From Ministeria vibrans ATCC 50519 (lineage: Eukaryota > Protista > Filasterea), in contig CALSCP010001260.1 of the NCBI GenBank assembly GCA_943704425.1, positions 15,862 to 71,916 on the forward strand: a DNA stretch of 56,055 nucleotides, read 5' to 3'. This document shows, piece by piece, positions 30,714 to 36,990 of the stretch. The number at the start of each line of letters is the position of its first letter. Within the stretch, counting starts at the first letter, position 1. Under the pieces are notes generated by a model that ran no database searches, was not told the DNA's origin, and saw only the letters and a list, made by a program, of their open reading frames with translations. Both the position numbers and the translations under genes were made by a program.

Positions 30714-31568
30714 TCACTCTTTCACTCCACACCCCCATCGGTACAAGTATATATCTCCGCTGTTGACCATTCCCGCAGTCCAGTCCTTCCAAATACGCCC
30801 CACAAGCGTAGACTGAAATGTGTTGGCAGGGTCCAGCTCTTGCAGTCGATGCCGCAGCTCAACCGCAGTCAGACATTCTTCGCCCTCACGGAAGGCCCGC
30901 CGGTCGGGACCCAGTGCGAGGACCAGCAGCTCAGTCATGCGCGTCTTGCTGCGATCTGCTGTGGTGAATGCTTTGGTGTCTTTGAGTGCGCTTGTGATGA
31001 GTAGGCGCGCATAGGCACCCCGTTGAGCGGGAGGCACTGCTGGAGTGCGCCGAGTGGGCAGTGATGGTGTGAGGTCCTCGTCGGGCTCAATGAACACGCC
31101 ACTGTTGCAGAAGTCGCAGAACACCAACGCATTGCCACCCAGCCAGAACACGTCTTCCTGGAGGATCGTATTGAGATTGCGTAGAGTCAGGCGCGACAGA
31201 CGACCGCTCACTGTCGCGCGTGCGTCACTCAGCAACAGCCCGCCAGCGCCATCCTCTGCTCCATGTCCAATCAGATGCACAATCAACAGCGATTCCTGTC
31301 CAGCAATCGATCCTGCTCTCATTGCCAGTTGATGCATGGCGTCCACAATCTGACTCCGGACCACCCGATCGCCTTTCTTCCAGTCCACCACACTCTCCAC
31401 ATCGCACCCTCGCGCCTTCCACACATCCTGGAGTAGTCGAGCACTCTCACGCACGCCTCGCAAGTCATTATAGTTCTGAAGCGCAGTGTTGCCCGACGAC
31501 TGGTAGCGACTCACTCCCACGATCAGCACAGACACATGCGAGTAGATGCCAGGAACTAACAAGAAAAC

Positions 31569-31601
<33 letters not shown>

Positions 31602-34600
31602 TATAATAGTGAATGTCAGAAAGAAAAAAATTAACTAACCGTTCCGTTTCACCCACCACTTGTGAAGATTTAGATTGCACACCAGAGCCTGCCCAGTGCG
31701 ACGCACAAGCTCTGCTCTCACCACGTCTCCGTCTCGGTATCGCTCAGGGTGTTTGGCGACACTTTCGGGAAGGAAGAGTGGACGGAATGCGTCGGTGGGG
31801 TGTGCGGGTACCACCACAGCAGAGCCGCGCCAACCCCACCGCAGAGTGCGCGTCGACTCACACACAGTCTCGGCCAACTTCGTCCACGTCGCCCCGCACC
31901 TGCCTGGCGCCTCACTCAGCAATTCCACACGAATGAACCGCTCGTTGCTGCTGAGTCGAAGTCGCACAGGGACACATCCGTCCATGGCAAGTGCATTGGT
32001 GCATCGTTGAGTCGCTTCGATGGGACTGTCAGGCGGACATGCGCGCCACAGTGCCACCACCACCAGATGAAATGTGGCGAGGGACACGGGAAGCACCTCC
32101 CAGTCGCCGGCGGCACTGCTTATCATCTGGTAGAGGAACAGAACAGCAGGGGCGGGCGAGGCGCTGGAGGAGAAGGAAGCGTCGTCGGGCAGCAGCATGG
32201 GCACCAACAGCAAGTCCCCGTGACGCCTCGCCAGACTCAGGTGCTCCAGACACTCCATGAACGTGCCAACGTCACCCACATCACCGCCACAGAGTAGGGG
32301 GTCCTCGCTGTCTTTGGCTGCCGTCCACACGAGCCACTCCGCCGCTTCGAGGGGAAATCCCGCCGCAGACGTTGTGCGCGACTCGTCCAGTCTTTGTAGG
32401 ATTTTCTCTGTGCGGGTCAGATCGGAAGCACGACCCGCCTCGACGACTTTCTTGAGCATGTCCAGGGCGCGGGTGCTTGACGCCTGTCCCCATTGCGCCA
32501 TCACCACCGAGCAGAGCAGTTCTAGCGCCGCAATCAGATGAGGGATGTCAAAGACGACCGTGTCCGTCTCGCGCACATCTTGAGACGTCGCGTTCTCACG
32601 GCACACCACAATGTCCGCGGCGGACTCCAGATAGGGTACCAATTCAGTGCGAATCATTGAGTCGTCCAAAACCAACGAAGAGAGAGTGATGCGAGGGTCG
32701 TCGTTGAGAACGAGTGAGCCCAGATCTGACACGCGCGACATGAGAGCAATCTTCTTCTCTCGTGCGCGGCGCCCAATCAAGTCTTGCGCACACACATACT
32801 CCATGGGTAGAGTACGCGGGCGCACAGCATCATGCATCGCCTTTGAAAGTTGTCCTAGTCCAATCCTTTTCTTGCTGCCAACTGCAAAGAACGCGAGGGG
32901 GGTGGGGGCGCTTGGTCGCATGAGGTGATTACCCAAGACCACGCCGACAAGCCGGAAGATCGCATCTGAGACTCTCTGGAGGAGAGCGGCTGGGGCTGTG
33001 TCGTTGGGAAAAGTGTCGAGGTGGGTGGCGACGATGATGACTTTGAAGTAGGAGTGCTTTGTGTCGGGGACTTGGTGCATGATCATGTGCGCCCACTTGG
33101 AAATGTGCTCGTACTGGCGCTGGGCGGTCGTTGGGTCAGACATGGCGAAGAGATCAAAGACGATGAGGTAGAGGGACTCGGAGCCCATGAAAAGGGCCGG
33201 GAGGGAGTCAAACATCGCTTCGCCTGAGAGGGAGAACATGAAGAGTTGAGCACAAGGTAAAGAAAAAGAAAATGAGAGTATAAGGGAAAGAAACCAAAAG
33301 TAGAGAGACATCAAGGGAGGATAGAAAAGGGACAAAGATACAGAGAAAGTTCAAGGTTCAAGACTCGGAGAGCGAGAGAAATAGTGTGCGCGTGCTTAGT
33401 GTATCGTTAGTGTGTGTGCTTAGTGTGACTAGTGTGTGAGTTTAGTGTGTATGTGTGTTAAGTGTGCGTGTGTGCTTAGTGTGTGTGAGTGTGCTTAGTG
33501 CTTAGTGCGTTGAGTGTGCGCTTAGTGTGCGGGTGTGCTTAGTGTGCGGGTGTGCTGTGTGCATAGTGTGTGTGTGTTTAGCGTGTGTGAGTGTGTCCAA
33601 GTGCGTACGCTTAGTGCTTAGTGCGTGTGCTCAGTATGCTTAGTGTGTGCATGTGCATGGGAAGAGGTACAGACCAGAAAACAGCAAAAAGAAAGTCAAA
33701 GATGAAAAAAAAATACGCATACCGGCAAAGTCAAAGGTCTCAAGGTCGATGTGGCCCTCGCGCAAGTCAGACTTGAGAAGAGTAAGAACGGTTTGCATAG
33801 TGGCGCTGATGATATGCGGCTGCGTGGGTGTCTCTTTTTCCATGAGAGAGGGAGTCGGGACTCGGATGTGCGGTGAGCAGCGCGTAGCAGGCGGGTTTGA
33901 CGATGAGGAGGGGGATGCCGAACGTGTTGCTTGTGGAGCGGGTGTCAGGGAGTTATTGTCCTGTGCGACAGCCGCATCAGTCACTCCGCTCTCCTCCGGC
34001 ACTGAGATGAGACTTGCTACGTGAAACTCGTCCTGGGGCACTGACTTGAAAAGACCTGTACGGCCATCGAAGGTCATGCGTAGTCGCTTCATGCGGGTCG
34101 CCACTGAGCGATCCATTAGGTTGGGGAGAGAGTTACCCTGCAGGGCCGCAAACAGAGCAGTCTTGCCGGCAAGGACAGCACCCAGAGAGAGTAATTTGAT
34201 TGAGCGGTGATGAACAGAGCCACGCTGGAGAGCAGCATGAAATGCACATTGATACGGGTCTATTATCACAGGTTAAGTCAAAAACAATTCAGGCTTAAAT
34301 TCAGGACCTTTCGCGGCTTCGAACTGCACAAAAAACGCCTTTGAAGCTTTCTTCCATTGCGCGCGGTCTGCAATCCACAACGTCATGACAAAGCAATCGA
34401 CACAACCCTACTTACCAACTAGAAAAGGTTCATTTGCGCATTGTGAGTGTTTTTCAAACTTACCAACTAAGAAAATGCAAAGAACATCACAAGAGTGCAA
34501 ACCACAGTCCAAATCAGTCACTCACAATTTCTCACTATTCACAAACTTACCAACTACGACAATGCAAAGAACATCACAAGAATGCAAATCACAATCCAAA

Positions 34601-36990
34601 TCAGTCACTCACAATTTCTCACTATTCACAAAACTTACCCCCTAAGACAATGCAAAGAACATCACAAGAATGCAAATCACAGTTCAAATCAGTCACTCAC
34701 AATTTCTCACTATTCACAAACTTACCAACTAAGACAATGCGAAGAACATCACAAGAGTGCAAAACACAGTCCAAATCAGTCACTCACAATTTTTCACTAT
34801 TCACAAAACTTACATTCTAAGACAATGCAAAGAACATCACAAGAGTGCAAACCACAGTCCAAATCAGTCACTCACAATTTCTCACTATTCACAAAACTTA
34901 CCAACTACGACAATGCAAAGAACATCACAAGAATGCAAATCATAGTCCAAATCAGTCACTCACGATTTCTCACTATTCACAAAACTTACATTCTAAGACA
35001 ATGCAAAGAACATCACAAGAATGCAAATCACAGTCCAAATCAGTCACTCACAATTTCTCACTATTCACAAAACTTACCACCTAAGAAAGACAATGCAAAG
35101 AACATCACAAGAGTGCAAATCACAGGCCAAATCAGTCACTCACAATTTCTCACTATTCACAAAACTTACCCTCTTAGACAATGCAAAGAACATCACAAGA
35201 GTGCAAACCACAGTCCAAATCAGTCACTCACAATTCCTCACTAATCACAAAACTTACTCGCTAAGACAATGCAAAGAACATCACAAGAGTGCAAATCACA
35301 GTCCAAATCAGTCACTCACAATTCCTCACTAATCACAAAACTTACTCGCTAAGACAATGCAAAGAACATCACAAGAGTGCAAACCACAGTCCAAATCAGT
35401 CACTCACAATTTCTCACTATTCACAAAACTTACTCCCTAAGACAATGCAAAGAACATCACAAGAGTGCAAATCACAGTCCAAATCAGTCACTCACAATTT
35501 CTCACTATTCAAAAAACTTACATTCTAAGACAATGCAAAAAACATCACAAGAGTGCAAATCACAGTCCAAATCAGTCACTCACAATTTCTCACTATTCAC
35601 AAAACTTACCACCTAAGAAAGACAATGCAAAGAACATCACAAGAGTGCAAACCACAGGCCAAATCAGTCACTCACAATTTCTCACTATTCACAAAACTTA
35701 CTCCCTAAGACAATGCAAAGAACATCACAAGAGTGCAAACCACAGTCCAAATCAGTCACTCACAATTTCTCACTATTCACAAAACTTACCAACTAAGACA
35801 ATGCAAAGAACATCACAAGAGTGCAAATCACAGTCCAAATCAGTCANNNNNNNNNNNNNNNNNNNNNNNNNNNNCTCCCTAAGACAATGCAAAGAACATC
35901 ACAAGAGTGCAAACCACAGTCCAAATCAGTCACTCACAATTTCTCACTATTCACAAAACTTACTCCCTAAGACAATGCAAAGAACATCACAAGAGTGCAA
36001 ATCACAGTCCAAATCAGTCACTCACGATTCCTCACTATTCACAAAACTTACCAACTAAGACAATGCAAAGAACATCACAAGAGTGCAAATCACAGTCCAA
36101 ATCAGTCACTCACAATTTCTCACTATTCACAAAACTTACTCCCTAAGACAATGCAAAGAACATCACAAGAGTGCAAACCACAGGCCAAATCAGTCACTCA
36201 CAATTTCTCACTATTCACAAAACTTACCAACTAAGGCAATGCAAAGAACATCACAAGAGTGCAAATCACATTCCAAATCAGTCACTCACAATTTCTCACT
36301 ATTCACAAAACTTACTCCCTAACATAACGAGCCAGAGTAGCGAATCAATACAAACTCGTGTCAGGTATACAGTCAAATAGCCCATATATCAACATAGAGA
36401 ATCTTACAGTCTACAGAGAGGTCAGGTCGTTAGAGAATTTCAAACGAGCATTTCCTCTTACAAACTGCAAACCACACAACGCCACCGATTCAAGCAAAAT
36501 AAAAATACGTTAGAACAGAACACTATCCATGATCAAGCAAGTCACGAACCTCCTACAGACAAGTTTATTGTTTTAGTTCGCGTCGACCAAACCAAACCGA
36601 CTTTCGCTTTACTGGCACAGAGATTGTTGAGAGACGGCGCGAATCCCTTATTCCCTTTATACGTAATTTCCTCCAGGTGGTCTCGCAACTGCAGAATGGC
36701 TGTTGGGAGCGTCCTGAGCTGGCAATTCCCGACGTCAAGCAACTTCGTCCCGAAAAACAGTCGACCCGTGAGAACCACTCGCCTTTCTCCCCCCTTTCCC
36801 ATACCTTAAGCTTCTTGAACTCTCCGATCCAGTCGGGAAGCACGCGAAGCGGGTTGCCTGTCAGCAGCAATTCCTGTAGAGTATCGGCAAGAACACGAAT
36901 TTCGTCTGAGAGAGAAGTGAGCCCCATCTCCCTCAGGTTTAAGGAATGGGACATTTGGGCTTCATGAATGCGTTCCTGTATAGAAGGCAT
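30714..36990 (-). CDS. Roco-family protein: LRR - microexon-encoded linker - Roc GTPase - COR-like - caspase-like (peptidase C14) domain
   Basis: Exons 36990-36805 and 36742-36602 encode LRRs; ~26 3-nt exons follow. A short exon (34323- or 34367-34308) leads to 34259-33723 (IKLLSLG...AGKT P-loop ... ETFDFAG|), then 33223-31640 (SLYLIVFDL, IIVATHLD, COR-like), then 31555-30714 (VLIVGVSRY, IVHLIGHG, VFCDFCNSG His-Cys dyad). All joins are GT-AG and frame-consistent. Confidence 0.85.
33385..33655. repeat. Degenerate (GT-rich, cttagtgtg) minisatellite within a Roco intron
   Basis: Repeated gcttagtgtg/ttagtgtg units interspersed with (gt)n. Confidence 0.75.
34455..36320 (-). repeat. Tandem array of ~88-bp units (at least 21; assembly gap 35847-35874); each unit is an ~85-nt intron plus a 3-nt exon
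   Basis: Minus-strand unit: gtaagttttgtgaatagtgagaaattgtgagtgactgatttggactgtg(a/g)tttgcactcttgtgatgttctttgcattgtcttag|NNN|. The triplet varies (TTG, GGA, AAT, GTG, CGA, GGG, AGG); the rest is nearly invariant. Confidence 0.92.

Follow-up and report, generated by a model that had tools for sequence, protein, structure and literature searches.

The question raised by this locus is whether a single gene of a protist joins a leucine-rich repeat (LRR) sensor, a Roc-COR GTPase switch and a caspase-like protease in one polypeptide, and what such a protein would be used for. The locus occupies positions 36990-30714, on the minus strand, of a 56,055-nucleotide (nt) stretch of Ministeria vibrans ATCC 50519 DNA (GenBank assembly GCA_943704425.1, contig CALSCP010001260.1, positions 15,862 to 71,916), the whole of which is called the window here. 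Read on that strand, seven kinds of exon come together in a single open frame of about 1,138 (or 1,139) codons, separated by six introns that are all GT-AG and with phases that match at each junction. It is highly probable that this gene model and its domain assignment (LRR, Roc, COR and a clan CD, C14-like protease in one gene) are correct. It is also likely, with somewhat less assurance, that the locus as a whole is a single intact gene, spliced to give a protein of about 1,138 residues that works by the sensor-switch-protease mechanism proposed below. A preliminary description, made from the letters of the window, had outlined such a gene; its placing of the four parts in one gene agrees with the fold, profile, intron-phase and family evidence, and the motifs that it quoted (P-loop, DFAG, ATHLD, IGHG, DFCNSG) are all present, at coordinates that are right to the base. 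The parts of the gene are listed below, a slash marking an exon border.

36805-36990, minus strand: exon 1, with the ATG at 36990 and the first two LRRs; donor AAG/GTATGG.
36743-36804, minus strand: intron 1, 62 nt, between LRR exons 1 and 2.
36613-36742, minus strand: exon 2, with the third and a partial fourth LRR, ending in phase 1; proposed donor CA/GTAAAG.
34416-36552, minus strand: 26-27 candidate 3-nt exons, each between CTTAG/ and /GTAAGT, their splicing being predicted from these sites.
34308-34367, minus strand: 60-nt linker exon with GT-AG borders, phase 1 in and phase 1 out.
33723-34259, minus strand: Roc N-half exon, with the P-loop GAVLAGKT, the switch-I Thr, a variable Ser/Thr/Pro-rich insert and DFAG.
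33224-33722, minus strand: intron splitting Roc after DFAG, 499 nt, phase 1, GTATGC...CTCAG.
31640-33223, minus strand: exon for the Roc C-half, COR-A and COR-B, 529 residues, with THLD (G4) at 33026-33015.
31556-31639, minus strand: COR-protease intron, 84 nt, phase 1, GTTAGT...GTTAG, containing (ATT)13.
30714-31555, minus strand: last exon, for the protease with its H100/C152 dyad, coding to 30717; stop codon TGA at 30716-30714.

Within these exons, K36 of the P-loop GAVLAGKT lies at 34164-34162, DFAG ends at 33723 and ATHLD is at 33026-33015; in the protease, H100 of IGHG lies at 31265-31263 and C152 of DFCNSG at 31109-31107. The linkage between the switch and the protease depends on the 84-nt intron at 31639-31556, which the preliminary description had proposed and which is indeed a GT-AG intron of phase 1; its removal leaves the junction in frame (...KRN/VPGIYSH). 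The same arrangement recurs throughout the genome, for which a 29.7-Mb assembly of 2,860 contigs was searched, the window belonging to contig C1260. At no fewer than 33 loci, the protease exon is immediately preceded on its own strand, 48-110 nt away, by the COR exon, and at 21 of the 22 loci checked a phase-1 GT-AG intron of 51-84 nt restores an open ...WWVK.../...GIYSH junction. In all loci checked, the Roc N-half exon lies upstream of the COR exon, and the intron corresponding to the 499-nt Roc intron, which in the window contains imperfect 17-24-nt CA-rich repeats (Tandem Repeats Finder, TRF), is at the same place in the paralogues. Metagenome contigs of the European Nucleotide Archive (ENA) samples ERZ23497041 and ERZ23497376 contain relatives (63% identity) that are laid out in the same way. 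Neither the protease exon nor the Roc exon can start a protein with an intact domain, because the first in-frame ATG falls at residue 76 of the former, past the first strand of the fold, and at residue 52 of the latter; the 60-nt exon has no usable start codon. Upstream of Roc, the order is supported by the paralogue on contig C1049 (73% identity), in which LRR exon 1 (1.3 kb upstream of the paralogue), the array, the 60-nt exon and Roc follow one another in the same order on one strand, the 60-nt exon being conserved as protein in this frame only. In the window copy every exon is open and every splice site canonical, with no damage to the catalytic or the GTP-binding motifs. The continuous open reading frames (ORFs) of two other paralogues, L013 and L014, were considered as intron-less fusions and rejected; they more likely contain in-frame introns and were not counted as independent proof.

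All searches and fold predictions were run exon by exon, rather than with the spliced protein joined into one query. For the last exon, they support a clan CD, C14-like protease domain of a very divergent branch, as the preliminary description had proposed. In the AlphaFold2 (AF2) model of this exon (predicted local distance difference test score, pLDDT, 84.6; predicted template modelling score, pTM, 0.89), H100 follows strand 91-101 and C152 follows strand 144-152, which places the putative dyad at the ends of consecutive strands. Foldseek searches with this model retrieved MALT1, caspase-9, caspase-8, CED-3 and the metacaspases of yeast, trypanosome and plant (best E 4e-7; 199 matches at E <= 1e-3). 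When 14 copies of the family were aligned, His100 was found to be invariant and Cys152 to be present in 13, the Cys motif of paralogue L011 having changed to CDCGNGG. The Pfam model Peptidase_C14 matched 10 of the 14 paralogues (best E 5.6e-10), one of which passed the gathering score of PF00656 (21.8 against 21.4), and CHAT matched 8. A profile of the family, searched against the sequences of the Protein Data Bank (PDB), found Arabidopsis metacaspase-4 and the Geobacter protein GSU0716 as its best matches, His being aligned with His and Cys with Cys; the family Cys aligns with the catalytic Cys139 of metacaspase-4, and in entry 6w8r, which carries C139A, the residue at this place is Ala. A single-sequence phmmer search of the protease exon against the same PDB sequences returned noise only (tubulin, designed repeat proteins). 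In the ESM Atlas, the exon fell among bacterial caspase-family clusters.

The distance of this branch from other proteases became apparent when the HMMER family profile was run against 1.84 billion representatives. At E <= 1e-3 it found 241 proteins, of which ten, at E <= 1e-30, were short metagenome fragments of the same lineage; the others followed after a wide gap, at 1e-9 to 1e-4. A word search with the protease exon gave eight metagenome fragments, again short and of this lineage, and nothing else. Ten of the remote HMMER matches were examined; nine were true Peptidase_C14 proteins and the tenth (P0012) was a family fragment that had no Pfam match. Several remote C14 proteins also had WD40, STAND-kinase or HEAT parts. 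Roc-COR was absent from all ten; when the Roc-COR profile was compared by hhalign with the unannotated N-terminal part of the remote match P0094, no relation emerged. The window exon shares with the metacaspases, orthocaspases and MALT1 of the C14 family the caspase-hemoglobinase fold, with His and then Cys after consecutive strands, and its family has the DxCxSG motif of metacaspases, but it differs from them in being very divergent, its nearest non-family proteins standing at E 1e-9 among the 1.84 billion. The motif DFCNSG resembles DSCHSG of metacaspases, and its Asp, which is invariant and lies two positions ahead of the Cys, would point to cleavage after a basic residue.

The Roc-COR identity is likewise supported by structure prediction, profile searches and motifs shared among paralogues. 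Alignments of 21 paralogues for the Roc N-half and 15 for the C-half show little or no variation in the P-loop (G-x4-G-K and its T or S), in DFAG and in the T-H-x-D core; at least 90% of the paralogues have the switch-I Thr. The C-half profile, run against the PDB, had the Roc domain of LRRK2 in six of its seven best matches, which were weak (E ~0.5-1.2), and aligned DFAG-E-x-F-x-S...FM and GTHLD to that domain. With the AF2 model of the 529-residue exon (pLDDT 81.6), the best 26 Foldseek matches were all Roco proteins, over 340-540 columns; they included LRRK1 (2e-8), LRRK2, the Roc-COR of Chlorobium tepidum, the COR-only entry 3dpt_B (3.3e-5) and M. barkeri Roco2. The ESM Atlas placed this exon among COR-A/Roc clusters at 0.96. 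The Pfam COR models had no match in the exons of the window gene. In the Roc domain, the switch-I region is separated from DFAG (window 33780-34030) by an insert of 70-110 residues that is rich in Ser, Thr and Pro and cannot be aligned among paralogues. Roc is predicted to bind and hydrolyze GTP, and COR to mediate dimerization.

The LRRs are the weakest part of the domain assignment. After excision of the intron at 36804-36743, three repeats match LxxLxLxxN/CxLxxLP at a spacing of 24 residues, and the period is kept across the junction of exons 1 and 2 by the acceptor and by the donor CA/GTAAAG. Ten paralogous copies of LRR exon 1 were found, at 57-80% identity, several of them on contigs that have no Roc-COR-caspase match, which suggests that this exon is a shared N-terminal module. 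A Pfam match to Sclerostin over window 36568-36990 (20.8 bits, against a cut-off of 27) was rejected as spurious; the ORF concerned reads through intron 1.

Between the LRR exons and the 60-nt exon lies the array of candidate 3-nt exons. Most of it is an 88-nt tandem repeat, at 34456-36322, with 21 copies and 89% matches by TRF. On the minus strand each 88-nt unit reads CTTAG, three variable bases, GTAAGT and then about 80 conserved bases, i.e., a 3' splice site, a triplet and a consensus 5' splice site. The 26-27 triplets of the array, read in the phase of the flanking exons (phase 1), are open and stop-free. The triplet TTT at 36354-36352 may be false, since its splice sites are weak and its use would create an intron of 33 nt. 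The C1049 paralogue has its own array upstream of Roc (C1049, locus L020, 3990-4593), in which the intron-like unit has diverged and CTTAG-NNN-GTAAG is kept. It is to be noted that the window sequence has a gap of 28 N inside the 88-nt repeat, at 35847-35874, flanked by ...CTTAG GGA G on one side and by TGACTGATTTGG... on the other, so that it starts one base past the triplet GGA. A full unit has 30 nt where the gap has 28 N. The triplet spacing over the gap is 86 nt, compared with 88 nt elsewhere; its two sides thus fit the repeat either as a single unit (±two bases) or as a single unit with a whole number of further units concealed. No core exon is touched by the gap, which falls in intron-like sequence of a single unit, and its content cannot shift the frame, because all candidate exons of the array are 3 nt long. 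We infer that the array may diversify the protein.

The window gene belongs to a large family. Its protease exon has at least 60 matches in the genome, about 36 of them full length, and the family comprises at least 40 copies, in a genome of about 30 Mb, that have a common Roc-COR-protease core with either LRR or WD40 repeats in front. As judged from match coordinates, WD40 repeat exons lie just upstream, on the same strand, in at least 15 paralogues; the window gene is of the minority LRR subtype, most paralogues carrying WD40 exons instead. The effector is constant in nearly all copies. Three Roc-COR loci (L026 on C491, L030 on C986 and L039 on C437) had no protease exon within 1.5 kb downstream, and the ORFs that follow them showed no Pfam domain. 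Contig C1441 carries three members, about 25 kb apart, and C883 and C1339 carry two each, which suggests local duplication.

Several loci have features of their own. At L013 (C2822, 313-9676), three long ORFs lie on the same strand, 36 and 108 nt apart; they encode, respectively, LRR_8, Roc with NB-ARC and DUF7779, and a Roc-COR-C14 paralogue, and make up either a receptor-like gene cluster or one giant gene. The region upstream of L014 is an assembly gap. At L016 (C2643, 6169-9939) there is an ORF of 1,256 residues with no Pfam match, the N-terminus of which is about 30% identical to the first half of the caspase-like domain; here, going by this similarity, the protease-like part may be at the other end of the protein. 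At locus L017 (C1664, 1014-7657), an insertion of 3.6 kb separates the Roc intron from the COR exon, and no Roc N-half was seen; on C312 (3892-4805), the protease exon matches as two pieces in different frames. Finally, a Logan contig of SRR23272272 (L044) has an ORF nearly identical to the protease exon of the C1049 paralogue (about 3 differences in 295 residues), and it would appear, therefore, that the same or a sister organism was sequenced in that run.

In the mechanism that we propose, the repeat domain would sense a ligand or a cell state, and Roc-COR would serve as a nucleotide-dependent switch and dimerization device, as in LRRK2 and the C. tepidum Roco. A change of the switch would then bring together or release the protease domains, leading to activation by proximity, as in caspases and MALT1, and the protease would cut a substrate. 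The linker between the LRR sensor and Roc may include about 26 single-codon exons. The most likely use of such a protein is in defence or regulated cell death, to which we would give close to an even chance; this use is favoured, by analogy, because the family has many copies, forms tandem clusters and exchanges its sensors, and because there are bacterial systems that share its design.

Those bacterial systems also bear on the novelty that the preliminary description had implied for the effector, and to this extent it was anticipated. In bacterial proteins that combine LRRs, an AP-GTPase (Roc) and COR, the C-terminus is one of about 24 effectors, a caspase being among them (Kaur, Iyer, Burroughs, Aravind 2021, PMC8195603). 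The order of parts (LRR, Roc, COR, effector) is that of the window gene, and both occur as multiple paralogues per genome. By the published description, however, the bacterial proteins are prokaryotic, without introns and variable in the effector, whereas those of Ministeria are eukaryotic, spliced and variable in the sensor (LRR or WD40). The gasdermin-activating protease of Runella zeae is a Roc-COR-CHAT protein shown to trigger cell death (Johnson et al., bioRxiv 10.1101/2021.06.07.447441). Like the window gene, it has Roc-COR followed by a C-terminal, clan CD caspase-like protease with a His/Cys dyad, but its protease is of the CHAT type, is encoded beside its gasdermin substrate and cuts after Leu; the window family is nearer to Peptidase_C14 than to CHAT (10 compared with 8 of the 14 paralogues). 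The LRR-Roc-COR-caspase design as such is therefore already published for bacteria. A search of the literature turned up no eukaryotic Roco described as having a caspase-like output, and as far as this search shows the eukaryotic instance is new.

LRRK1 and LRRK2, together with the C. tepidum Roco, are the best structural matches over the Roc C-half, COR-A and COR-B, and they also have LRRs in front. The motifs of the window gene are LRRK2-like (DFAG followed by ...FM), with THLD in place of NKxD. These proteins differ from it in having a kinase or nothing as effector and are 10-14% identical to it, and the Roc of the window gene has its own variable insert. The LRR-ROCO proteins of brown algae form a large family of proposed immune receptors with exon-level tinkering at the N-terminus (PMC11378527); they are eukaryotic and have the LRR-Roc-COR order, as the window gene does. 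In the brown algae an entire exon encodes each LRR, and these exons undergo shuffling or alternative splicing; PMC11378527 does not mention a caspase. In Ministeria, by contrast, the unusual exons measure 3 nt, and COR is followed by a protease. The logic of a WD40 or LRR sensor, an NTPase switch and a caspase-type protease activated by proximity is also that of the apoptosome and the inflammasome, in which Apaf-1 or an NLR acts with a caspase. There, however, the switch is a STAND ATPase and the protease is separate and recruited, in contrast to a Ras-like GTPase with the protease on the same chain. No exon of the window gene has a Pfam match to NACHT or NB-ARC; the protein would function in an NLR-like manner and is not an NLR, and the likeness is one of analogy, not of membership. 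A more elaborate picture, in which Ministeria has a single-chain, GTPase-gated counterpart of the apoptosome or inflammasome, with more than 40 receptors, interchangeable LRR and WD40 sensors and about 26 single-codon exons that are variably included to tune or diversify the protein, is rather improbable.

Several observations weigh against the reading of the locus as one intact receptor gene with a protease output. Pfam gives the LRRs of the preliminary description little recognition (LRR_14 only, at E 0.08), and LRR exon 1 is better conserved among paralogues (75-80%) than the core domains, which does not look like a fast-evolving sensor. Pfam Roc (PF08477), searched in halves, stays under its gathering score (12-19 bits against 27; E 0.028), in part because the intron splits the domain after DFAG and also on account of the 70-110-residue insert. 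The last exon of the window gene is missed by PF00656. Inclusion of the 3-nt exons in the window gene is a candidate event, taken from a listing of splice sites (AG-NNN-GTAAGT). An exact search of metagenome and metatranscriptome contigs for the spliced COR-protease junction found no match, and a word search of protein collections with a 1,044-residue paralogue found no full-length relative. Gasdermin (PF04598) was not found in the genome, a search that was uninformative, being blank in control genomes as well. Lastly, the two near-identical copies, on C1664 and C312 (about 93% protein identity), are damaged, and recent duplicates thus do decay.

This last point leads to the alternative that the window copy, like those family members, is itself decaying, or that it is not expressed. 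Its closest copies do show the insertion of 3.6 kb with loss of the Roc N-half and the protease exon in two frames, but the window copy has all its exons open and all its splice sites and motifs in order, and we regard its decay as improbable. Far more improbable still, to the point of being nearly negligible, is that the caspase-like exon belongs to a separate transcript, which the preliminary description had named as the finding that would count against it. The unspliced frame does stop two codons into the 84-nt intron, so that its retention would give a Roc-COR protein without protease. Against a separate transcript stand the in-frame GT-AG intron, the recurrence of the adjacency and of the phase-1 intron at the loci enumerated above, and the position of the first in-frame Met, past the first strand of the fold. 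The other adverse finding that it had named, profile searches that fail to support C14 or Roc-COR, did not materialize either, as profile and fold searches support both. There is a further, small chance that the LRR exons and the 88-nt array belong to another, upstream gene, or are non-coding, and that the Roco-caspase transcript starts nearer the Roc exon. Such a division is favoured by the repeat of about 2.2 kb between LRR exon 2 and the 60-nt exon, by the exon-2 donor, which is a proposal, and by the occurrence of the same type of LRR exon 1 at the head of genes that have no Roc-COR-caspase match on their contig. It is opposed by the want of a usable start codon in both the Roc and the 60-nt exons, by the agreement in phase of exon 2, the 3-nt units, the 60-nt exon and the Roc exon, and by the order of parts in the C1049 paralogue.

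A different kind of alternative accepts the gene model and disputes its use, the protein being a housekeeping or developmental signalling protease, or else a silent scaffold, i.e., a pseudo-caspase of the c-FLIP type. The conservation of the LRR exon among paralogues, the altered Cys motif in L011 and the blank search for a substrate such as gasdermin would fit this view, and the case for an innate-immune or cell-death receptor is one of architecture, copy number and sensor swapping. Against it, the His is invariant and the Cys is present in 13 of 14 paralogues, and at least 40 copies, tandem clusters and two types of sensor are the usual signature of receptor families driven by conflict; bacterial proteins of the same design, moreover, sit in defence systems. 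We therefore consider a non-defence role unlikely, though to be taken seriously, and retain the receptor for defence or regulated cell death as the leading candidate.

Roco proteins have mainly been studied through LRRK2, and the control of the output domain by Roc-COR is debated. A Roco family with a caspase-like output would offer a second, easily assayed read-out of the Roc-COR switch. The link of the gene to arrays of 3-nt exons makes it a test case for the function of such arrays. The size of the family and the exchange of LRR for WD40 sensors make it a candidate receptor repertoire in a protist. Overall, a design that bacteria use against invaders is now found in a eukaryote, which bears on how modules of biological conflict may have been reused in the cell-death and immune machinery of eukaryotes.

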